A stretch of 64,000 nt of DNA, from contig MU008226.1 of NCBI GenBank assembly GCA_010909165.1, positions 11,530 to 75,529 of the forward strand, in the 5' to 3' direction. The translations under genes were made by a program, and so were the position numbers. Below the pieces are notes generated by a model. That model was not told where the DNA came from. It searched no databases and worked only from the letters and a program-made list of their open reading frames with translations. This stretch comes from Anthoceros angustus (Eukaryota; Plantae; Anthocerotophyta). Shown here piece after piece: positions 5,131 to 60,973 of the stretch. The stretch's first letter is position 1. Every line of letters begins with the position of its first letter.

Positions 5131-6118
5131 ATGCACGCCAGACCCGTTTTATGCTGCCTGAACATTCTCCTGATCGGCTTCGCAGCAACTACCATTGGAG
5201 TTCTATTCTGGTTGGAGCATGGCTCACCCAGGTTTCCATCATATGTTCCGATGGCGGTCTCAACTTTCTATGTCACTTCAGGCTTCTTCGGTTGTGTTGC
5301 ACAATTTCGGAGGGGCTGCCGAAGGACACATTGAAGTTGTTTCTGTCTCCTTCCTCCTTTCAGTGGGAGTCTTTCTCTTTATGACGCTGCGCAAGGACGT
5401 TGTGGTCCGTCTTCTTCTCCGATCTGGCCAGAACACCGTCAATGCAGCTTCTGAAGTGGTTCTCTTCTGCCAAATCACATTCTTCCTTATGATAGTGTCA
5501 CAAACCGCTGTCGTTTTGTCCAATTGCTTTTGCGACAAGCATAGAATTCGCCGGAGAACAGGTCAAGAGAGGCGGAGCGTCCGTTGGTCACGCGGCTTTA
5601 ACGATTGCCAGGCACACAGATTCCACATCCAGGCCCGGACCTATGCCATCCTGTAGGATCGAAATTAGCACGACTAATGACAGGGTATTTCGCGCTTCAG
5701 ATGTTTCGGTACCAGGTTCTGGGTTCCCTCTGGACGATTTTCGGCTGGCTCAACATCGTCGGGAGATGTCCCATGGGCCAGAGATTCAGCAGGAAGTCGT
5801 GCTGCGGAGATTTTTGCAAGGGAAACGGCGCCAATGCCTTTTGGTCCGAGAGCAGCCAGAGTGACGAAGGACTTGCAGGTGGAAAAGATGCGGCAATTAG
5901 CCAACAACTCAAAGCGACAATATACACCAGAGTCTGCGGGTGGATACTCAAGCACAGAGACCGTTCCAGATGTGGAATTTGAGATCTCGTCCCTCAGCAG
6001 CACTGAAGCGGATGATGATGCCGACAGCGTGTACTCTGCGCTGTCAGATATCCAAGGTGGTCAAAGCACGGCAGAAAGTCCATCGACAGGAACTGGCTCG
6101 TCCGACGCTAAGCAGTGA
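5131..6118 (+). CDS. Four-TM membrane protein (tetraspanin-like topology) with Ser/acidic tail; needs 2-3 frameshifts (pseudogene or assembly error)
   Basis: Hydrophobic stretches LNILLIGFAATTIGVLFWL, YVPMAVSTFYVTSGFFGCVA, IEVVSVSFLLSVGVFLFMTL and VVLFCQITFFLMIVSQTAVVLSNCFC; frame switch near 5325. Confidence 0.55.
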
Positions 6119-6259
6119 AGATGAAATAGGATGCCGGACCCTGAGTTCTTTTGCGTTTCAGTAAGGGCCGATTGGATCCCTCCTCGAATGACGATCGAAA
6201 CTCGAGTCGAACGTAAGAACCGTTGGTCTGATAAGGGTGTTCGCATTTGTCTACGTTTC

Positions 6260-6385
6260 ACCGTACGTTGTGTCCTCCATCTCTACCCTCCGAACAGCTT
6301 AACGTCTCATTACATAGGTTTTAGTGAAAGGAGCCGGATATATTTCCTTGCATAGTTGTATTGTTGGAATTTCCGTATGGAACAT
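6260..6385 (+). repeat. Diverged direct repeat, copy B, downstream of the four-TM ORF
   Basis: Block similarity to positions 1-95. Confidence 0.6.
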
Positions 6386-27574: not shown

Positions 27575-28150
27575 ACTCCTTGCCTCTAGCTAACTGCAAA
27601 CATTGACTGTGGCCAATCCAGAGGGCTTGCGTCAATGACACTCTCTGGACGATGCTCACAGATGCCCACTGCTAGATTGCCGGGTTGTGATACAGTTGCC
27701 GTACAGACACGGTCTCCCTTCTCATACTGGAAATTTCTTTGCATTCGTAACTATTCCACACATTGGTACCATATCACGGTCAGGGGTCTTCTTGTGGTTT
27801 GTGGAACCGCGTCTCACGATTCCAAAGTCTTTCAGGACCTCTGAATTGAGCAGACTGGCCAATGCCAAGTTCAGTTGCCACCAACCTTGAAATGCCACAA
27901 CACAAGATAGGCAACAACATCGTACACTCGCGGTTCCAATCCAAACACGGTCCCTTATTCTATACAAGCGTTTGACAATTTGCTTCCAGCATCTCCTCTG
28001 CGAACAGACCACAAAAGTCTACTAAATCCTTGTTCATTACCAAACTCCGTGAACAATGGGTAACTTATTTCATTTTATTTTAGCTCAATATCTAGCGAGC
28101 TTATACCTCAAAAGAAAACCCACAAGGAGTCAGTCCCCACTCGAGGACCG

Positions 28151-28355
28151 GCGTCAAGGAACTTGGTACTTTAACAACTTGTACACTTGAGGAGCGCGGC
28201 GTCATGGAACTTGGTACTTAACAATTTGTACCATGGTGTGCCTAAGTTACTTGTACCAAGGGCATCCACTCCCTTTAGACACCCCATGTAAGTAGCGATC
28301 TAAATTCAGGATGCTTAATGACGGCGTTCTTATAAATGTGTGTCCATTTGGACAC
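28151..28355 (-). mobile_element. 5S-like SINE family copy 3; 3' part duplicated, tail absent
   Basis: Reverse complement aligns to 42812-43024 (aagaacgccgtcattaagcatcc...gatcgctacttacatggggtgtctaaagg). Confidence 0.8.
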
Positions 28356-28904: not shown

Positions 28905-29712
28905 GATTTCACAAAGTAAAGTATCACGTCTTGCGCTTCCATACTCATGAGTCCTTTGCCATTCTGAGGAATTTGTGCATGTGAGCCAATCTGGTAGAGA
29001 GGAAGTCGCGGTGGTCGGAGTGCTTGGTGGAGGACTTGCTCATTGCAAGTGCCTAAGAGTTGCTCCCCTTGTGAATGGTTGCTGTGAAATTGCTTTGCTT
29101 TGGGTGTGTGGCCCGAGAACTCTCGGCTTGAGGGTAGACTACAGGAAAGACTCCCTGGAGGTTCTCATTGTCAGTGTCAAACTCATAGCAAGGAAGAACT
29201 TGCTGGTGGAGGCCGCGGTTGTGCCGTAAGGCGAGTCGAGCATGGCCGGCGAGGTTAGAATAGGAGGAAGAGGATGAGGAAGATGAGTAGAGGATTAGAG
29301 TGTAGGCGTTGGGAAGGCCACAGGCGAGCCTAAGGGACGAATCCCAAATCTGCAAGTAAAGGCGCTCCACAGGTGGAAGAGTGGTCTTAAGTAGGGACGA
29401 AATTGCGGTGTGGATCGAGGGGGTCCACAGGTGATAGGCTCCCTGCTAAGGCGGGACACCTGGTGTGTGTCGTTGTAGGTCGAGGATTGGTAGTTTTGAG
29501 GCGGTGCAAGTGGCGCACTGTAAGAGGTGAGTAGAGGCGCCTTGCTTGTTTAGAAGGTGAGAAGTTGTGTGTAGGTAGCGATCGGTCATCACACGACCTC
29601 GAACTTTCACACGAGTCTCATGGGGCCGAAACCCAGCGTCTGAGCGGCGATTGGGATAAGTGGTAGCTAGAGTGGGAGGATCTTGGAAGCCTCGGGGTTT
29701 TCCCTACCACAA
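28905..29712 (+). repeat. LTR/UTR-like repeat, inverted partner at ~41390-42245
   Basis: Long colinear match (gtaaagtatcacgtcttgc..., tgtgaatggttgctgtgaaattgctttgctttgggtgtgtggc, gtgtcgttgtaggtcgag). Confidence 0.85.
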
Positions 29713-30250
29713 GAGAAGAGACTTGCAGCTGACGGAAACAGGGGCGGTGATCGGGGGAATGCACGAAGGATTGGGTGGAGGACATTATGCAGTTCAAGTT
29801 ACCACCAAAAAGATTTTGGAAGCAGGGTACTGGTGGCCCACAATGTATGGAGAGACACACCACTTTGTGAAGAAGTGTGATGCTTGTCAGCGGATCGGGA
29901 AGCCTACTCCGACAACACAATGGCCGTTGGTGCCTATTCTGACGCTAGCACCTTTCGAAAAGTGGGGTATTGACTTCGTTGGATCCATACAGCCTACAAC
30001 AAGACATACACAGAAGAGATACATCCTGGTGGCAACCGATTACTGCACCAGGTGGGTTGAAGCAGTGGCGACACGGACGGACTCAGCAAGTACCGTAGCG
30101 AAGCTCATCTATGAAAGTATTAGAACCTGGTACGGATGTCCGTTGCAGTTGGTAAGTGACAAGAGAACCCATTTCCTTAATGATGTGGTGACAGCCATGA
30201 CGGAGTATTTTGGCATTAATCATCAAAAGGCGGCACCTTACAATCCATAG
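29712..30250 (+). mobile_element. Ty3 integrase fragment, closely related to the 7.9-21.8-kb element
   Basis: MHEGLGGGHY...ILEAGYWWPTMYGETHHFVKKCDACQRIGKP...PFEKWGIDFVG...DYCTRWVEA; truncated at APYNP. Confidence 0.95.
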
Positions 30251-31648: not shown

Positions 31649-31850
31649 GAAGAAGAAGAAGAATTTTATTTAAGTCCACTAAGGGATTTACATGGGACTT
31701 GGTATAACAACTTGTACCATGGTATGCCTAAGCTACTTGCACCAAGGGCATCCATTCCTTTAGGCACCCCATCTAAGTACCGATCCAAGCGGGATGCTTA
31801 ATAATCACGTTCTTATAAATGTGTCCATTTGGCCTAAGCCATTTGGACAC
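31649..31850 (-). mobile_element. 5S-like SINE family copy 2, with (TTC)n tail
   Basis: Reverse complement aligns end-to-end with 42812-43024; (GAA)5 on the plus strand. Confidence 0.85.
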
Positions 31851-32454
31851 ACATGAGGAGAAGCATTTTCATCTGGATTATAATTTCCACCACTCATCTA
31901 GTTGAGCAAATATAATGAGGAAAAGTCAGAAGCACAACCATCACGTTGCCAAAAAAATGGGCCAAATCCGATGCTCCTAGGCCGGTCAAAACATTTTTAA
32001 AAGTGAAAAGTCTTGGCTCCCAAGGTAACCAGAGGTCACAAAAAATGTTTCACTACACACAACCGTATATGATAAAAGAGGCTTGCCAGCTGGCTTCTAC
32101 TCTACATTCGACCTCCTATTGCTGGTTGACATACCCTACCCGTCTGCACATTTCATCAAAACTTGGCCACCATATATTCCATTTGACCTCGGTCACGCTC
32201 ATTGGCCTAGGGACGCGGGCATTGCCTGCAGGTGACGGCCCAAGGTGGAAAAAAGACAGAATGAAGGGTGGGGGGACGCCCCGTTTCACCATATGGTCGC
32301 GCTAAACCTAAGGCCGAACTAGTATGGTTGTGTGTCAGCTCTTTCCATTCATGACTTGTAGCAGTGGACACATGGTATTGTTTTTCTAATGTGAACAGGA
32401 CCATGGCTAGCAGGCCTTCAACATACTTTGCTCGAATGTCGCCGGACTTCAAAG

Positions 32455-39650: not shown

Positions 39651-42600
39651 TACTTATACCTAGATGTGGAATGCAATTTTGGGTCACGCTCAAGTGGGTT
39701 CGTTTTGGAGAAGACCCAATTTCTTTTGGTGAACGGTTTGAAAGGAATGTGTTAGAACTTTTTTTGGTTCTTTTGGAGTCGTAGGATAGTGTTAGGAAGG
39801 AAGGTAGAAAGCTTAGGGAGAAAGCGGGCAAAATGGCCTTCAAGAGAGGAGAGTAGGTGCCAAACCCTAATCAACGGCATCTCTGTCAGGGTGGGTGCCT
39901 CACTGGTGGTGGGGTGGCTACCTATTAATGTAGGTTGTTCGAGTAGAAGACATGGTAAAGGACTATATATGTGATTAGTGGGCGGATTAGGATAATTATG
40001 TCTTAAATAGGGTAGTTAAAGACAATCCAAGATAATTAGGATAATTAGGATGAATTTGGTAATTAGAATGATTAAGAGAAATTAGGAAATTAGATAATTA
40101 GGAAAATACCAATTCAGGATAAGGCAATAAGGGAAATTAATATTTCCGATATCGATGGTGAGGAAGGTGCGATGTGGCACCCATCTAACAATCAAGGTTT
40201 GGGAGGCATTACTTCAACCGGACCCCCACTCACCTTTTCTCTTGCAGCTTGGAGTCCCCACAATTGCATGTCAATGTAAGGGAGGCGGCCGTGGTAGCTG
40301 GGCGCGCGCTATGGTGGCGAGCACAAGGGCAGCGTACAATGGCTACGCCGAGGAGGAAGCGCCTGCATTGTGGCAAGAGCACGAGAGGGCACTAGGAGTA
40401 AGCCCGGGTGGCGGTGGCGCAGATTGGGTGGTTGCATTGGAGCGGTTGTAAGAAATTGTATGGCGAAGGAGCGACGGGCTAGAAGAAGAAACCCCTATGA
40501 CGGTGAAGAGGGAGAAGAGATTGTGTGTAGTGGACAAGTTGTTGGGGAGGCTGTGGCCTAGGGCGGAGGCTCAGCAGAGCCTAAGGGCTGTGGTTTGAGG
40601 CCAAAGCACTAGGAGGCCGTTGAGAGATGAGTTGTGGCAGAGAGGGCGCCAGTTGCCTGGGGTCTTAGGAGCTTGTGGGCAGTTCGGGAGGAATTTGCCA
40701 CTTTTTGTGGCAATTGGGACTAGGAGACACCTCTTGAGGGAATAGGGGTAAAAGGCTTGGCAAGGGTGTGCAAAGGGCTGTTGAGGGCTCTGTTTGGCTA
40801 TTGAGGCTAAGGCTGGAGTGCAGGTAACCTACCATGGGGAAGTAGGAGTCACGGAGGAAGGAGTTTTCTCCTCAATTTCTTGAAGGGAATCAGGAAGGAG
40901 ACATGGTGAAGACTCCTAGGGTGAGTAGAGCAAAGAAGAAGGGGCCACGCCAAGCGGAGGCCACCTCAAGTCAATCACCCTTGAAGGAGAAGGGGCAGCT
41001 AAAGGCAAGGAGGCTAAGGCGAGACTCGAATTCCCAAGAAGGGGCTGGAAATGCCCAAGTTTATGTGCTTTGCGGATCGGATGTTCCCAAAGGACTTGAT
41101 GGATTTTAGACCGAGCTAGGAGAATATCCAAGCGGTGGGTGTGTAAGCCTTGGGCCTACTCAAATGCAGGTTGATTGAGGTGCTACTGAGCCTCCATCAA
41201 TCGGAGGATTATTTAGCAACCCTACTAGAGAGGAACGGGACTAACCCTCGATGGGACGGTGTGCAGCAGACAGTGTATGGAAGACCTCACAACGAGGATA
41301 GCGGGATAGTTCTCATGGAGAGAACTGGTAATGAGAAGAGGTCTCCTATGCCACCTTTGCTTGATGAGGCCGTAGCTCTCATGGTGGGATTGTGGGAGGA
41401 AAATCCCGGGCTTCCGAGATTCACCCTCTAGAGGTCATACTTATCCCATCGCTTAATACGTTGGGTTTAGTCCCATGAGACTTGTGTGGACCGTCGGATT
41501 TTGAGAGATCAATCGCTGACTACACCCACTCACAACATCAGCCCCTCAACAAGCAAGGCGCCCTCTAACTTCCCTCTACAGATGCACCACTTGCCTTTGC
41601 TCCAAAATTCACCAACTCGACCTACAACGACACAACACAATGAGGCCATGCCTCAGCGGAAAGGAGTCCACCACAGGCGCCAGGGACCCCGGCCACGCCC
41701 GCGATTTTGTCCCCACCTCCTCCAACGATGGAGCGCTTCTTGCAGATTTGGGATTTCCCCGTAGGCTCGCCTTGGGCCTTCTGCTATTTCCTACACTCTA
41801 ATCCTCTACTCAACATTCCACTCCTCCTCATCCTCAACGCTCAGCTCGACTCAACTCATCATCCTCCTACTCTAACCTCACTTCAAGCTCATTGGCCCCA
41901 ACTCCCTTACAGCTGGCTTGGGGTCCACCTACAAGCCAGCAAGTTCTTCCTTGGGCGGTTGCTTTGAGTTTGACACAGGGCAGTGAGAACCTCTAGAGTC
42001 TTTCACGTAGTCTACCCTCAAGCCGAGAGTCCCTTGGGCATTGCCACACACCCAAAGCAAAGCAATTTCACAGCAACCATTCACAAGGGGCCCGCAGGAT
42101 CGAGCCCTCTACCAAGCACTCCGACCACCGCAAACTTCCTTTCTACCAGACACTGTGTTAGCTTTTAGTCGGCACGAAATTCCTTCACCAGGAGCAAAGG
42201 ACTCACGAGTTTGGAAGTGCAAGACGTGATACTTTACCTCTCAAAACTTGTCCTCTTATGTAGAACATATATATACGGCCTCCCTTAGTCTAGACTCCCT
42301 CTTCCTTGATGGCTGCCAGCTACACAATTTAATATTTCTTGACCTTTCAAAAGGCCTCATTAATACTTTCCTTGGAAACTTAACCCAACCGTTAGCAGGC
42401 CTTTAAATAATTCTTATCTACCTCACCCACTTGCAACCATCATAGCTTCCTCTTTAACACTCCTAGCTAACAATAGTCCTAGCTACAAGCAATCCTCCAA
42501 GGCGTCAAGCTGTGATCCTAAGAGAGTTGTCAAGTTTTTAAAACCTTAGGGGAGACCTTACCCTTATCTTCCCCCACACTCCTTATTACCATCCATTCTA

Positions 42601-42811
42601 GCTCAATGGGCTCAAGAGTAGAGCCCTCTCGTCCTCCTTGAGGGAGGATATAGCTTCGAGTTTGTTAAGATGGATATGACTATGTAAAGATGTAGGTGAT
42701 TGAGCTTACTATAAGTATATAGAAGTGGGTAAATGAAACATATACCCCTATTGAGTAGAAAATGTGAGTGACACTTTTAGGGTTTAACAGGGTGAGACCA
42801 GCTAGCTATAG

Positions 42812-43024
42812 GCCAAATGGCTTAGGCCAAATGGACACACATTTATAAGAACGCTGTGATTAAGCATTTTGAGCTTAGATCAGTACTTAAATGGGGTGCC
42901 TAAAGGAGTGGATGCCCTTGGTGCAAGTAGCTTAGGCACACCATGGTACAAGTTGTCAAGTACCAAGTCCCATGACGGAAATCCGTCCTTACTGGACTTA
43001 AGTAAAATTCTTCTTCTTCTTCTT
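42812..43024 (+). mobile_element. 5S-rRNA-like SINE copy 1, complete
   Basis: 5S A-box/C-box-like core at ~42847-42900; (TTC)n tail; CTATAG TSD at 42806-42811 and 43025-43030. Confidence 0.85.
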
Positions 43025-43297
43025 CTATAGCAAGTTCAGCTCTTTGACTATTGTCTTTGTGTTGTTTGCTCAAAGTTGCTCTTCATTTGTGTTTTAAGGC
43101 CTTGTATAGGTGGTCTTAGTTTTGCAATTCTGAACACTTGCTTTCTTGACACTTCTTACCCTCTTGAAGCATGGTTAGCTTCCAATCTCAACATTTCGCT
43201 GGCCATCCATCCCCTAGTAAGATAGTTCTGACCCTCTTGGCCGCAGGCATGTCTTCCACACATGCTTTCCTTACCCTAGGGGAGGAGGGTTTCACCT

Positions 43298-43410
43298 CCT
43301 TAGCCCCTTGTTCTCCCACTAATTTACCAGTGGCCTCCTTAGCACCTTGTTCTCCCACTAATTTACCAGGGGCCTCCTTAGGCCCTTGTTCTCCCACTAA
43401 TTTACCAGGG
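43298..43410. repeat. 33-bp in-frame tandem repeat x3 (GKLVGEQGAKE-type, minus strand)
   Basis: ccttgttctcccactaatttaccag repeated three times. Confidence 0.9.
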
Positions 43411-44849
43411 GCAGCAACCCCTGACCTTGCTTCCTCTGTAGGGGGAAAAGTATTGGCTTCCCCCATCGCCTCATTCCCCTTAGCAGCCCTCGGACCTACC
43501 GGGAGGTCCCACCTATGGTGGTAGGTAGGTCACCACCACGATGGGTGCCTTACCTCACGGTGAGGGTACTCCGGCCACGGCAATGGGTGCACGACTCGTC
43601 GGTGGGTCTCATACCTTCACTGAGGTAAGCTCCCACCGTGCAATCACCCCTTTCCTCGCCATCGGCAGCGCCTATCACAAGGGCTCCCCTAGCTGCCCTG
43701 TCCTTCCTGCTGTACTTCCTCTTCCTCGGTAGCCTCCTCCCACTCGGACTCCTTGGAGTCCATGTCACTCTTAGCTTCTTCAAAGTCTAAGGATCCGACC
43801 ATCGTCATAAGGGCCTCCCTGTCATCATCATGTGGCCCGCATCCTCCTCTTCACAATATTTTTTGCAATGAGCTTACACTCCAAACTACCACCATGCTTC
43901 ATGAGCTTGGGTTTCCTTGTTGAAACCCTTTCGGCATCGGCTTCTTCGCAACCTCATCCTTGCAGCTTGGCCCTTAGCAATCCCATAAGGAGAACAAACA
44001 CCAAGATGCAAGAAAGAAAAAAGAAGATAAGAGGAGAAGAAGAAGACATGGGAGATTGCCCTTTGCCATGCTTTTTAAGAACTCACTATCTACAACAAAT
44101 AGAAAAGAAGAGATCATCATAGATTCTACAATAGCTCAGCTAGAAGGCAAGAGAATTCACCCAAGCACTAAGGAAACTAAGGACGCCCCCCACCCCTCTA
44201 AGAAGAAATTCACTCTCAAAACCCAGCCAAGGCACACCAAGACCCGAGAAATTGGTAGCACAAGAAAGAGAACACCAAGAGATGGCGGCCTCACTCCTAA
44301 GATGGCACACACACAAGCAGAGGGCGCATACACAAGCTCTAGCTCACTCCCCCCTGTACTTTAAGACAACGCTCCAGTCTTCTCATGTGACAATTATAGC
44401 AACAGAGCTTGCCCAAATTGAATCCTAAATTGCAGCCATGAAATTAAATGGTTATTGCAAGCATGCAGCCATATCCCATCCATTATTCCACACAGCCAGC
44501 CATAACTTCTAATTTCTATCGAGCCATCATCAATGCATGAATCTAAGGCTTCTCCTCATCCATCTTGCACAAATTCAAGACCTTAGCTGGTTTGCACCAA
44601 GAAGGCTCTTAAGTCATTAATCCTTCAGCTCAGCAAGAAGAACATTCCACCATCTCCTTGGCCCTAGGCGCCCATAGAGACCATCTTGCCCAGCAAAACC
44701 CAAGGAAAAAGCTCAATCCTCAGCCTCCAAAACCCATGCGCGGGCTGCCTCGACCCCTACTAAGCACTCTCCCAATCAGCTCGACCCTCTAGCACTCTCC
44801 CAATGAACTCCCGTGTGTCTTCTCAAATATGAGCTTATATTCCTCACAC

Positions 44850-44905
44850 AAAAAGCACCCCATTTGGCTGATCCGTCCTTAGCACGCTTAATTCTTGAGT
44901 TTTAC
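44850..44905 (-). promoter_or_regulatory. 5S internal-control-region-like motif followed by T5
   Basis: Minus strand aaaactcaagaaTTAAGCGTGCTaaggacggatcagccaaATGGGgtgcTTTTT. Confidence 0.55.
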
Positions 44906-46519
44906 ACTCCAATATCCAACACACCAAGTTCCCTTGTGCATGCCTGCTAAATAAATTTTACTCATTCCCTATTGAACTCCTCACCAAGCTCCTTACCAAC
45001 ATTTCTCCTTAGCGAACTCCTCCACCAACTCTCGTATTAGCCTCGTTGCTGCCCAACTCTTTCGCCACCACAACGGCATCCCTTCACATCTACTTGCAGC
45101 CCTACTACAAATTCCGCCTTCATGATGCACACCCTGTTGCGATTCCTTCACCATGTTGCAGCCCACCTGCTGCCTTCTTGTGGCTGTGTTACACCTCCAT
45201 CTTGCAGCCCAGCTGCAAATTTAGCTTGCCATGAGCGCTCTACCACGACCTCCTAGTTTGCTTTGCGGTCCTATCATGCCATCCTCACACGCGTTACTCT
45301 ACAAGCACTTCCACATGCTTCGGCACCACCATGGCCTCCTCTTGCAAATGATTAGCATTCGGTGCACCATAACTTCAGCTTTCTTCCCTGTCTTCTTTAT
45401 CCTTTGCCTTGTGGCCTTCATCCTCCTGCAACATGTGCTAGGCACTCTCCAATTCCCCTTCCTTCACCCCCAAACTACGGCGGGTCTCTCTTAAAACATC
45501 TTGGACACTCCCTCCTTGCTTGGCATGGCCCCTTGGTGTCCATACCATAGTAGGTATGGTACCTACCCTCATAGGTGCAGCACCACCATGGTAGGTATCG
45601 TACTACCATGGTAGGTTCCACCAACCACTTCTTTGCCCTCACATCTTATGTTCCTGGAGCCTCTCCTTGGGACTCCTTGCGTGTTGCCTCTTGCTTTGGT
45701 GCAAGTTGACATAACATTCCTCAATCAACTCTAAATTCAATAAGCCCAAATCTCTACCATACACCCAATCTAGCTGAATATTCTCCTCCGCTGTCCAAGG
45801 CCTAAAATCTGCAAGGTCCTTTAAGGTAATTGCCCTGCAAAGCATGTGAATTGTGGCATATCTAGCTTCCATCCTTGGTGTGGAGTTCCAACCTTAGGCT
45901 TGACCTTTGCACCCTGCTCCTTTGTGGGTGGCTTGGTCTTCGGCCGCCTCCTTTCCTTCACTTTGGAAGGCCTTTTCATGGCTTTCTTGTTGAGCTCTTG
46001 CACAAAGTTGAGAAAAAGGGTCACTTCTCCTGCAACTCTTACTACTTGCATTCCTACTGTTGTTGACCTTCCTCCCTTACGGTTTTCACACACAATCCAC
46101 CTTGACCTCGCCCTTGCTCACAATTCTCCTTGCTCCTTCAACCTTGCCTTCCTAAGCACCAACTCCACCTGCTGTATAATAACTAACCACCTAAATAACT
46201 ACTAAGAAAACTTACTTAGTGCCCTAGGTATAAAATAATGTTTAACTAAAGGTGCCCTAGTGAATAGTGCCATAAACCTACTATATTTTATCACTCCCAC
46301 TCACTATGAATTGAGGGTGATTAAGTAGAGTGCTTTTACGGCTTCAAAATGAGCCAAATAGGCATAAAATTGAAAACTAGTTTTAAGGTAAAACTAACTT
46401 GAAAGCATAAGGCAAATAAGGTAAATAATCTAAACCCAATTGGGGTTTAGATCTGGACCTTTTGTCTATAAGGAATGTTCTTCATCTCCTCCTCCTTGTG
46501 ATTGCTTGCAGGACATTGG

Positions 46520-47645
46520 TCTTTGCTAAGCCTTATCTAAAGAGGCGTTGCAATTGGCCTGCAATCAGTCATTCCAAAACGATCCAAGAGTTCCTCAATG
46601 TACTTGAGTTGTCCAAGCTTGATTGTTCTCCTCACCTGTCTCTAACCACTTGAATGCCAAGGCAATAGTTGAGCTCCCCAAGTCCTTCATTTCAAATTGT
46701 CTTGACAACATCTCCTTTACCTCATTGATGGCATCTATAGATGCTCAACAAAATGAGGTCATCCACGTATATGGCTAGAATAACCATAGATTGGAGAACT
46801 TTGGATATGTAGATGCTCTCATCGGCATTGTTGAAATCCTTGCTCCTTTAAGAAGGCATTGATCTTCTCATACCAAGCTCTAGACCCTTGCTTCAATCCA
46901 TAGAGAGCTTTCTTCAATTTGCACACCAAACTCTCATTGCCTTTTTCGATATACCCTTCAGGTTGCTCCATATAAATGTCCTCCTCCAAATCTCCATTGA
47001 GAAATGCAGTTTTACATCCATTTGATGAATCTCCAAATCATCAATTGCTCCACAAGTAAAGTCCTTATTGACACAAATTTGGCCACTGGAGCAAAGGTCT
47101 CATTGTAATCGATGCCTTGTTCTTGGCTATATCCCTTCACCACCAATCTTGCCTTATATCTCTCAATCTGACCATTAGAATCTCTCTTGATTCTAAACAC
47201 CCATTTGCTCCCAATAGCATTCCTTCCCAGCAAGGAGGTTAATACCCAAGTGTCATTCTTCTTCAACGACTTCATCTCATCATCCATAGCTTCTTTCCAT
47301 TGCTTTGCATCCTTCCCTTGTAGTGCTTCAGCTATCGTTCTTGGTTCCCTCCCATATTCCATAGCAATGGATGCAAACTCTGGTCCTTCTCTCCAATCTC
47401 TTGGTGGACGACGCTCCCTTGTTGGATATCTCCTCGGAGGAAGAATTTCTTCTCTCAAGGGTTCTTCCTCATTGTTTCTCTAGGGATCATTTCATTCCCA
47501 TCAATCGAATGACGTCTTTTCCAATTGGTTCTTGAGGTATCACAACCTCATGAGCATCAACAATAGGAAATTTCTGCTATCTATAGTCTCCGCCTCATCA
47601 AAACCACATCTCTACTTATGATGATGCGCCTAGATGCCTTATCAT
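46520..47645 (-). mobile_element. Ty1/copia fragment (INT end to RT N-terminal half)
   Basis: EPRTIAEAL...WKEAMDDEMKSLKKNDTW...KWVFRIKRDSNGQIERYKARLVVKGYSQEQGIDYNETFAPVAK; YVDDL-coding region near 46760. Confidence 0.95.
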
Positions 47646-54781: not shown

Positions 54782-57700
54782 TGTGGAGATACCTCATGCA
54801 TCTAGCAAGAAAGGCCAAGATGCAGGCATGGAGCAATGGAAATAAAACAATGTGTATTTAATAATGAGCAGAAAAATGTTATATACAAAAGTAGCCTAAT
54901 AACCCTAAATAGCATAACCTAAAAGTAAGTGGGATATTTAACCGTCGTGGTTATTAATCCAACACTCCCACTTAACCTCGACGGGTTAAAACCAGTATAA
55001 AGTCCACCAAAATAAGTTCTGGTCAGCACCCCATCCGGGTACTGATCGGCACCTGGCCGCTTAACTGCAGAGTTTCGATATGAAGCCCGCTACAAGCCAC
55101 GCTCCCGCTTTTCCTTGCACTATGTCTACCAAAATACATTTATAACAAAGCCATTGCGAGATTCAGATAAACACGGCATAAACACGGCTCCGCGCGAACA
55201 CAGCTGTTACCAAAAGTTGCGATCTTCACATCGCTGGTGGCGCCGCGACCTGAATTTCTTCACAAACATGGTGCAACTTGAAAGCGTGGGTTTTCTAGCC
55301 AAGGGCACTCGAGTGCGGATCTCGTGAAAAATCTCAAGGCTCCTGCAAATCTGCAGTACCAGAAAAATCTGGCCAACCACGGCACCTGTTGTCGGACTTA
55401 GCTAGGGCTGATGGCAAGTGCAAGGATTCGAGTTCTTTGGAAGAGGCGAGGGCTCGTCTTCTTGAACTCATGCCAAGTGGAGACACGGGTGGAGGAAAGG
55501 GAAGATGATAGGCGGTGGAGGAGTATAGAGAAATGTTGAGGGAACTCAAACTCGGGGCCTATACACCGTGAAGCGAAACGAAGGACATTAAGGTGAGCAT
55601 CTCGTGATAGCAATCTCCATGTCACGATTAGGTAATTGTGAGGCTTCATTGAAAACATGGAGGCGATGGTGACTAACCTAGATGGTGCTCCCACTGCGGT
55701 GAACAAGACAACCAAGGCGAAAAAGGATCACGGTGGAGACTAGTTACATTGCAAATTCGTGGGTCACCATGTAAGCATTCAATCAGCGTAAAATACTTGC
55801 TGAAATCTACGAGACCTAAACCCTCTACATGTGTCGATGTTTGTGTTTGGGCGGTGGTTTAGTGAGGACATCGTGTATTTCCGTCGGTGTGGATATAAGC
55901 AGGTGACAATTCCCCTAGCCTTGACATCCCTAACGTAGTGATGTGCAATTTCTATATGTTTCGTTCTAGCGTGAAATCTAGGGCGATCAACAAGGGCTAG
56001 GGCGATTGATTATCACGGCGGTGTAGTAGGAGTAGCTGCTCACGATTAGCGAGGAGAGGAAAGAGCGTGCCCATTGACTTCTTTCGCGGCATCGGTGAGA
56101 CATTTATATTCTTGATGCTTGAGAGAACGTCTTTGTTTCTGACTCCATGTACGTGCGAGATAAGAAGAAGACATATAGACAAGCTCTTGCGTGTGTCCCC
56201 ATCGGATGCCAGTCGGCATCGAAAGGGCGACAAGGTGTTCTCTGTTCTTTTGTAGCATAGTCCATAATTATGTGTCCCTTTAAATAACGAAATACTCGTT
56301 TGATGGCGATCCAGTGATTACGGCCGGGGATCCAGTGAGAGGCGTGTTCACATATGTGATGTCCGGCCAGTCCGATTACTTACAAACAATAAGGCCCATG
56401 CGTGCGGTATGGGACATCTTTCATGTCGCAATGTCAGCAGCAGAACGGATGTCATCCTTGGTGAGCTTCACTCCACTTGCACAAGGTGTGTTAGCGGGAT
56501 GTACCTTTAATCATCCATGTTAAAAGCGTTGGAGAATTTAAAATGTATTTACGTTGATGGATGATGATCAAACCCTCCGCGTACTCTCAATACTTGTATA
56601 CCCAGACAATTTGCTCCCTACATCATCATTTCAAATTGCATTGGTAACATGTCTTGAACTCGTGCTAACAAGTGGTATCATTTCCGGCAAATATGGCATC
56701 ATCAACGTAAGCGAAGAACATAAGAGGTGCCATCATCATAGATGTAAGCGAAGGATCTGCGGGGCTTTGTAAAATCCAAGGCCCCTTAGGCGGTATCCGG
56801 TCTTGCATTCCACCGTTACGCACTTTGTTTAAGACCATAAATACATAATCGGTGACCATAGTGCGGATGATCGGTCTTCATAGCCTTGCATTCCATATAC
56901 AATTCTTCTTGAGTATCCCATGTAAGAAGGCCGTTTTACATCCATTTGCTGCAATTCTAAATCACGTTCGCTAAAGCAAGCATGAGGCGAATTGATTGAG
57001 AGCGCGGAGAAAATGTCTCCTGGAAATCCAGACCAGGTATTTGTGTGAATCCACGTGCGCAGAGCCTTGCTTTATAACGTGCTATGTTACCATCAGCACC
57101 TAACTTATGCTTGAATACCCATTTGCAGGTTATTGGTTTGCGCCCCTTAGGACGAGGAACAAGTTTCCAGGTACCATTTTTCATAAGACTGTTGAATTCA
57201 TCATCCACATGCCTCCACTTATCTCTATCAGACCGAAAATGCTTCTTTGAGAGTGACAGCTCGGGAGGGATGATGGGCAAAGAGGCATTGTGACGGATGG
57301 GATCAGACTCCCACCGACTTACAGTCAATAGATGTGTAACGGGCTCTAGCCATTCGAGGAGGGCGATGAGCACGTGTAGACCTCTCTGTTCATGTGTAAT
57401 ATCGGTGGGGTAATGTCTCTTCTTCACCGGAAGAATCGAAGCTTGGGAAGCTCGGGTTCGAGTTCGATTCTACTGTGCTTGGATTGTGGGGAGGCTCATG
57501 ATCCGAATTTTCAGCATTGTCATGTGTGTTACGCATCGGGCTCGCATCTAGTGGAGTATCGGAGGAGCGGTGGGAGATGACACCAGATCGACCTCACCGT
57601 CAACATCATCTGGATACTCACCGAATTTTCGAATACAATTCGTAACCCCAAAAGTGCACGTAAATAAGGAGAATCGGTGATGATGGAACCAAATGCTCAA

Positions 57701-60700: not shown

Positions 60701-60973
60701 TTCACCACGCGAGAACACACGTTCTCCACGACCACGAGGCATTGCAAGATACAAAGGATTCGAGACACCATCAAGGTGCTCGATACCATGTGGAGATACC
60801 TCATGCATCTAGCAAGAAAGGCCGACGCGAGAGGCATGCGAGCAATGGAAATAAAACAATGTGTATTTAATAATGAGCAGAAAAATGTTATATACAAAAG
60901 TAGCCTAATAACCCTAAATAGCATAACCTAAAAGTAAGTGGGATATTTAACCGTCGTGGTTATTAATCCAACA
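54782..60973 (-). mobile_element. Full-length Ty1/copia element (~6.2 kb), LTRs 54782-54964 and 60789-60973
   Basis: Near-identical ~185-bp LTRs (TGTTGG...CACA); PBS TGGTATCGAGC 60778-60788; PPT 54965-54979; TSD ACGG(G); INT FWHARLGH; RT GTWKLVPRPKGRKPITCKWVFK...YKARLCARGFTQIPGLDFQETFSP. Confidence 0.95.
55021..55085 (-). promoter_or_regulatory. 5S rRNA-derived core (A box, IE, C box) in the copia 3' UTR
   Basis: Minus strand atcgAAACTCtGCAGTTAAGCGgccaggtgccgatcAGTACccGGATGGGgtgctgacc versus plant 5S AGAACTCCGCAGTTAAGCGTGC...AGTACTAGGATGGGTGACC; not a full 5S gene. Confidence 0.75.

Follow-up and report, generated by a model that had tools for sequence, protein, structure and literature searches.

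No 5S-derived SINE is known in plants according to a review from 2024 (PMC10946416), as the original prediction had supposed, and our literature search recovered no later report of a SINE3 from a plant or a hornwort and no paper on hornwort SINEs. Promoters of 5S type are nevertheless found in several other mobile elements. The Cassandra TRIMs carry a core of about 70 bp from the 5S control region, with variable letters between the boxes (PMC10853983). In the Ajax TRIMs described by Kojima the 5S part has been reduced to the promoter (box A, IE and box C) and its predicted fold differs from that of 5S, and some SINE3 families have, according to the same author, also kept the promoter only while their upstream part has diverged (PMC10886601). 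Since both Ajax and some SINE3 families keep the promoter only, recognition by a covariance model is not strictly defining for SINE3. Among plant elements, the LTRs of Cassandra are the only known carriers of 5S promoters. Cassandra has been proposed to originate from a SINE3 that was inserted into an LTR, a proposal for which plants have so far offered no SINE3 in support (PMC10886601).

Here we describe a short repeated element from a hornwort, identified in a window of 64 kb, by which we mean the whole stretch of DNA that was analysed and to which all coordinates refer. We consider it probable, although far from certain, that the copy termed c1 belongs to a high-copy, 5S-headed SINE of the SINE3 type, that its head has kept only the control region of the 5S gene, and that this head came directly from a 5S gene and serves as a type-1 Pol III promoter. 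The positions of the element, its parts and the related sequences are collected in Table 1.

Table 1. Coordinates of the SINE copies, their parts and other 5S-like modules in the 64-kb window
Feature	Position	Strand	Remarks
SINE copy c1	42812..43024	+	213 bp; about 5 nt short at the 5' end relative to the family start GTGTGTCC
5' target-site duplication of c1, CTATAG	42806..42811	+	exact 6-bp repeat
5' leader with 14-bp duplication	42813..42840	+	CCAAATGG CTTAGG CCAAATGG ACAC
5S internal-control-region-like head	42845..42901	+	5S positions 37-92
AGAAC in head	42848-52	+	5S-spaced motif
A-box core TTAAGC	42860-65	+	5S-spaced motif
TTTT in c1	42867..42870	+	copy-specific C>T changes; family majority is TCCT
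IE-like TTAGAT	42875-80	+	head of c1
C-box-like TAAATGGGGTGCC	42888-42900	+	canonical plant C-box is AGGATGGGTG (PMC10853983)
3' stem-loop region	42964..42999	+	GACGG-AAAT-CCGTC and GTCC-TTACT-GGAC; may be what the reverse transcriptase of the partner recognises
(TTC)n tail of c1	43008..43024	+	AAGTAAAA directly before; AATAAAA at that place in c2
3' target-site duplication of c1, CTATAG	43025..43030	+	its first C also closes the (TTC)6 run
SINE copy c2	31649..31852	-	204 bp; complete 5' end (GTGTGTCC); (TTC)5 tail
SINE copy c3	28200..28355	-	head and body homologous; without the 14-bp 5' duplication; 3' part different
Orphan 5S-ICR-like module (mod44)	44850..44903	-	about 55 nt; TTTTT directly after
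Copia-borne 5S-ICR-like module	55030..55083	-	LTR pair 54800-54964 / 60807-60973; just internal to one LTR

The sequence of c1 matches its original description in the size of the element, the 6-bp direct repeat and the (TTC)n end, and the string of motifs quoted there was found at 42847-42901. The target-site duplication is exact over its 6 bp, and the tail is a (TTC)6 run spanning 43008-43025, the terminal C of which overlaps the 3' CTATAG. At the other end, c1 lacks about 5 nt of the family start, which is present as GTGTGT-CCAAATGG in c2 and in the consensus of the flanks in run X1 (see below). The internal TTTT would, as judged from its letters, halt Pol III early, and it is because of this run and the shortened 5' end that c1 is probably transcriptionally dead.

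Two more copies had been reported for the window, and both were recovered by blastn with c1 as the query: c2 at 31649-31846 on the minus strand (87% identity over 210 nt) and c3 at 28200-28351, also on the minus strand (89% over 152 nt). No further match of the element rose above noise within the 64-kb window. The 14-bp duplication in the leader is common to c1 and c2 (31819-31846 on the minus strand in the latter). The target of c2 is rich in TTC and has TCAT duplicated at 31853-56 and 31647-50, which gives a target-site duplication of at least 4 bp as compared to 6 bp for c1; with tails of (TTC)5 and (TTC)6 and a 5' truncation in c1, the two copies thus display the variable-length duplications and the simple-repeat tail of SINEs. 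The third copy, c3, starts with GTGTCC, has a simple hairpin in its leader (GTGTCC-AAAT-GGACAC), measures about 156-246 bp and ends near a run of TTTTCTTTT at 28110-28118; it has neither a TTC tail nor any other clear tail. In its 3' part (28110-28200, minus strand) an internal segment of about 35 nt is duplicated (GTACAAGTTGTTAA..GACGCCG) and the stem-loop is another one, GTCCTCGAGTGGGGAC. This copy may represent a subfamily with another tail or may be a rearranged copy. All three copies are short and non-coding (213, 204 and about 156-246 bp), in agreement with the size (about 100-600 bp) and dispersal of SINEs, which are present in many copies.

Abundance was assessed with contigs of one public sample (runs X1 and X2) that were placed on positions 41500-45500 of the window at a likeness of at least 80%, with 42999-43034, which includes the tail, masked. 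Run X1 yielded 2520 contig records on this 4-kb stretch, nearly all of them at 42813-42976, where the summed depth was 64,414, as compared to 0-700 in most flanking bins. A separate abundant repeat of about 270 bp (41902-42169; X1 depth about 5,800-6,300) is located about 650 bp upstream of c1. In 58 of the X1 records the match breaks before 42813, and the outer flanks are diverse (agreement 0.44) with a consensus ending in ...TGTGTGT; in another 22 it breaks past 42976, again with diverse flanks (agreement 0.48). Pieces from other copies in X1 carry ...AATAAAATTCTTCTTC..., and the majority letters of this run differ from c1 at 42855, 42868, 42869, 42882, 42890 and 42957. We refer to c1 with these six best-supported changes, which come from the contigs of a single run (X1), as the read-majority version. 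Run X2, classified as RNA by guess only, yielded 95 records in which the element is always enclosed in longer contigs of up to 6.5 kb; these would be read-through products and not proof of a Pol III transcript. The element is a dispersed family with copies in the order of thousands and a common 5' boundary. The high copy number that had been proposed is thereby borne out, both by the three copies in 64 kb and by the roughly 2,500 X1 contig records, and we have little doubt that the element is a high-copy, SINE-type retroposon.

To compare the head with genuine 5S genes, we scanned genome contigs for the conserved plant C-box string, which identified 35 small plant-contaminant contigs; the reference genes were full-length according to Rfam (103-116 bits) and represented 14 distinct sequences. 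Positions 42845-42895 of c1 aligned without gaps to positions 37-87 of plant 5S, with 32 of the 51 sites identical, and the read-majority version with 34 of 51. AGAAC, TTAAGC, GTACT and ATGGG in c1 are all at the 5S spacing. The Smith-Waterman score of c1 against 5S was reached by 9 of 2000 dinucleotide shuffles and that of the read-majority version by 1 of 2000, so that the line-up with plant 5S, originally made by eye, holds against Rfam-verified genes and, for the element itself, exceeds what chance would give. The same test gave 26 of 2000 for c3 and 821 of 2000 for c2, the score of which, taken alone, is not above that of shuffles. When both strands of the window (128 kb) were searched by nhmmer with a profile of the 14 sequences, c1 ranked second (42845-42900, plus strand; positions 37-92; E=1.6) and c3 was found lower down (E=24). 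The direct similarity to canonical plant 5S is modest, with 63-67% identity over 51 nt, and weak when judged over the whole window, and outside positions 37 to about 92 the SINE head shows no likeness to 5S. Only the A-box to C-box part of the 5S gene is kept in the head. One motif of the original line-up needs amendment: AGTACT is present in c1, but it results from a private G>A change, the family majority being GGTACT (42882 A>G).

The 5S-like part is located in the 5' head, in sense orientation, and shares its strand with the tail. Near the 5' end, A box, IE and C box follow each other in the order and at the spacing of 5S, as in SINE3. Position 1 of 5S falls on 42809 and the family 5' end (its first G) on about 42807, so that the distance from the start to the A box in the form represented by c1 and c2 equals that of a 5S gene to within about 2 nt. 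This register hinges on the 14-bp duplication, which is absent from c3, where the leader is 14 nt shorter. The read-majority version is free of T4 runs on the sense strand and has one on the antisense strand, and T4 or T5 runs are located 63-68 nt downstream of c1 and c2.

The covariance model for 5S rRNA (RF00001), proposed as a check of the prediction, did not support it: no match to c1 was obtained at the gathering threshold in the window or at E<=10 in segments of 431 nt and 129 nt around the element, where the only matches at E<=10 were chance matches to snoRNA and sRNA models, with neither 5S nor tRNA among them. The predicted RNA fold of c1 is no better than that of shuffles (z = -1.08) and is not 5S-like, and the consensus fold of the three copies has zero compensatory pairs. 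The Rfam 5S model also misses the copia-borne module and mod44 and is thus blind to fragments that comprise only the control region; its silence on the SINE therefore points to the loss of the 5S fold and does not speak against a relationship of the promoter region. Among the properties used to define SINE3, significant similarity of the head to 5S was found with the shuffles and with the SINE-free profiles described below, the direct nhmmer search of the whole window giving E=1.6, whereas neither recognition by a 5S covariance model nor similarity to the whole gene was found.

The two additional modules place the SINE head in a broader context. The best match to 5S in the window is the copia-borne module (nhmmer E=3.6e-4, positions 33-87; 72.5% identity over 51 nt), the score of which was reached by 0 of 2000 shuffles; it belongs to the internal region of the element, adjoining the LTR, and is followed by TTATTTT. 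The orphan module, mod44, sits in sequence that is unique within the window and ranked third with the 5S profile (44879-44902, minus strand; E=3.1), with 3 of 2000 shuffles reaching its score. Its A-box half is 5S-like (TTAAGCGTGCT) and its C-box half SINE-like (GGATCAG..AAATGGGGTGC), so that it forms a bridge between 5S and the SINE head; it may be what is left of another 5S-headed element, or else a small Pol III unit. Common to mod44, the copia module and the SINE heads are GATC(A/G)G and ATGGGGTGC, where plant 5S has GAGTAG and ATGGGTGAC, and judged by these letters the SINE head is closer to the two modules than to canonical plant 5S.

We also built profiles from two 5S genes together with the copia module, mod44 or both, with no SINE sequences included, and searched the whole window after masking the sites used for training. 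Every combination gave the three SINE copies as matches 1-3, and the next match had E>1.5. For c1, the E-value was 2.4e-5 with 5S, copia module and mod44, 1.4e-4 with 5S and mod44, and 5.6e-3 with 5S and the copia module. When 5S was left out and the profile consisted of the copia module and mod44, c1 still had E=4.6e-4, as compared to E=1.6-4.8 for 5S alone. The ranking indicates that the SINE head is one of several sequences of this genome that resemble the 5S control region, at least one of which is significantly 5S-like by itself. Pattern searches elsewhere recovered no SINE core in metagenome or viral contigs, and no module and no plant 5S in viral contigs. The module pattern had 7 matches in metagenome contigs; these contigs were GC-rich and bacterial-looking and the matches lacked a 5S context, and we attribute them to chance.

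Taken together, the head is highly likely to descend from a 5S internal promoter, be it directly or by way of another element. The original claim of a SINE with a 5S-derived head thus stands as far as a dispersed high-copy retroposon with target-site duplications, a (TTC)n tail and a head related to the 5S control region is concerned, with the qualifications that the likeness covers the A-box to C-box part only and that it is closer to the other 5S-like modules of the genome than to 5S itself.

The alternative that fares best accepts a genuine SINE-like retroposon but has its head acquired second-hand, from a 5S-like module on LTR or other elements, or has these elements take the module from the SINE. 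The derived letters that the SINE has in common with the copia module and mod44, and the far better E-value of c1 with the profile of these two modules than with 5S alone, are what such a transfer would produce. On the other hand, the comparison was with the 5S genes of other plants, so the common letters could simply be those of the genome's own 5S; three types of module do not give the direction of transfer, and the hypothesis of Kalendar and Kojima has the opposite direction, from SINE3 into LTR (PMC10886601). We consider a second-hand head unlikely, though it is the most serious of the competitors, and infer direct descent from a 5S gene rather than from a 5S module that was already present on another retroelement. 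A related and tentative idea, which we consider less likely than not, is that the genome has one derived 5S promoter cassette (GATCAG plus ATGGGGTGC) that moves between kinds of retroelements. It is possible, on this idea, that the same cassette heads a SINE of thousands of copies, sits in an autonomous-type copia element beside the LTR and also occurs by itself, in a unit of some 55 nt ending in TTTTT. If true, the plant would preserve the step of capture from SINE3 to LTR that has hitherto only been hypothesised for the origin of Cassandra.

A SINE-like retroposon with another promoter, in which the likeness to the 5S control region arose by chance or convergence, is improbable. The lack of an Rfam match, the modest identity, the score of c2 and the private origin of AGTACT in c1 all fit such a coincidence, but it would have to account for an ungapped alignment with every motif at the 5S spacing, on the correct strand and in the correct register, for a score that only 1 of 2000 shuffles of the read-majority version attained, and for the first three ranks of the SINE copies in 64 kb with profiles to which they had not contributed.

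Still less probable is a tRNA-derived SINE, the type to which nearly all described plant SINEs belong, or a set of 5'-truncated LINE 3' ends. Weak A-box-like strings can be pointed out (TGGCTTAGG and TAGCTTAGG), yet a scan for tRNA A and B boxes yielded nothing convincing, the best B box having 3 mismatches in 9 specified letters, and no tRNA was detected in the element by ARAGORN or, at E<=10, by Rfam. A tRNA-like head, which would have spoken against the prediction, was thus sought by three routes and not found. Random truncation of LINEs would hardly produce the 5' boundary at 42813 that 58 contigs have in common.

The least probable reading, a solo LTR or the LTR of a Cassandra-type TRIM with a 5S promoter, can appeal to Cassandra as a known plant carrier of such promoters, to a family start with TG and to the location of c2 and c3 3.3 kb apart in the same orientation, but the element ends in a length-variable (TTC)n and not in CA, its duplications are of 6 and at least 4 bp and not of a fixed 5 bp, neither a PBS nor a PPT is seen beside c1, no LTR-type direct repeats enclose any of the copies (search of 26-50 kb), c2 and c3 differ at both ends and are antisense to a gypsy integrase fragment (29660-30250), and the X1 flanks are diverse on both sides.

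The element has no terminal inverted repeats. The whole window is rich in transposable elements; degraded genes of LTR retrotransposons near the copies include an integrase core with a zinc-binding domain at 29660-30250 on the plus strand, and the remnant of a copia-type reverse transcriptase is located at 47012-47458 on the minus strand. As to a LINE partner, the 3' region of the element matches nothing else within the 64-kb window, and the 10 ORFs of at least 117 aa scanned between 21.8 and 54.4 kb contained domains of LTR elements only and no non-LTR reverse transcriptase.

Returning to a SINE with a head directly descended from 5S, its amplification could be pictured as follows. We infer from the promoter motifs that the element uses Pol III and TFIIIA. 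TFIIIA would bind the control region and bring in TFIIIC, TFIIIB and Pol III, which would start about 50 nt upstream of the A box, that is at the element's own 5' end (GTGTGTCC), and would transcribe the body, the (TTC)n tail and the flank as far as the first run of T4-5. The reverse transcriptase of a non-LTR element, presumably a LINE, may recognise the 3' stem-loop and the (TTC)n end and copy the RNA into a nicked, often TTC-like target, and the insertion would leave short target-site duplications of variable length and an occasional 5' truncation. The 5S genes of Arabidopsis are reported to depend on TATA-like elements upstream as well (Cloix et al. 2003, Plant J); these would be left behind on retroposition, which is a caveat for a retroposon with an internal promoter only.

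The gap in the proposed origin of Cassandra would be closed by a 5S-headed SINE that is present in many copies in an early-diverging land plant. Such a SINE would be a second, independent case in which a plant element captured a type-1 Pol III promoter, and a test system for whether the internal promoter of plant 5S works without the upstream elements of the gene. Programs that search for SINEs by tRNA boxes and by tails of poly(A) or poly(T) would overlook the family, so that hornwort genomes probably contain thousands of copies that have no annotation or a wrong one.

Compared with described systems, the hornwort element most resembles the SINE3 elements of animals and fungi (zebrafish SINE3, AmnSINE1, the lepidopteran HaSE3, the MEG families of bats and AfuSINE3 of Aspergillus), which are likewise short non-autonomous retroposons. 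In both, the 5' head has the A box, IE and C box of 5S in sense orientation, the body is unrelated, a simple repeat forms the tail, and target-site duplications are present. It differs from them in its land-plant host, in retaining only about 55 nt of 5S (37-92), in receiving no score from the Rfam 5S model and in its (TTC)n tail, and its origin is likely to be independent of that of the animal and fungal SINE3. With the Cassandra TRIMs of vascular plants it has in common that a plant mobile element carries the core of the 5S control region, but in Cassandra the module is located inside paired LTRs, in an element with PBS and PPT and 5-bp duplications, whereas the hornwort element consists of one unit, which has a microsatellite as its tail and duplications that vary; the copia module differs from Cassandra as well, being located in the internal region beside the LTR rather than inside it. 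The Ajax TRIMs of nemerteans are similar in that their 5S part is confined to the promoter and the fold is not 5S-like, but Ajax is an LTR element of animals and the hornwort element a retroposon of the non-LTR type in a plant. The tRNA-derived SINEs of flowering plants listed in SINEBase are comparable in size, copy number, dispersal and target-site duplications; they have a tRNA-like head with a B box and a type 2 promoter, whereas the hornwort element lacks both features and its motifs point to a promoter of type 1. As far as the literature searched shows, it is the first 5S-headed SINE from plants.
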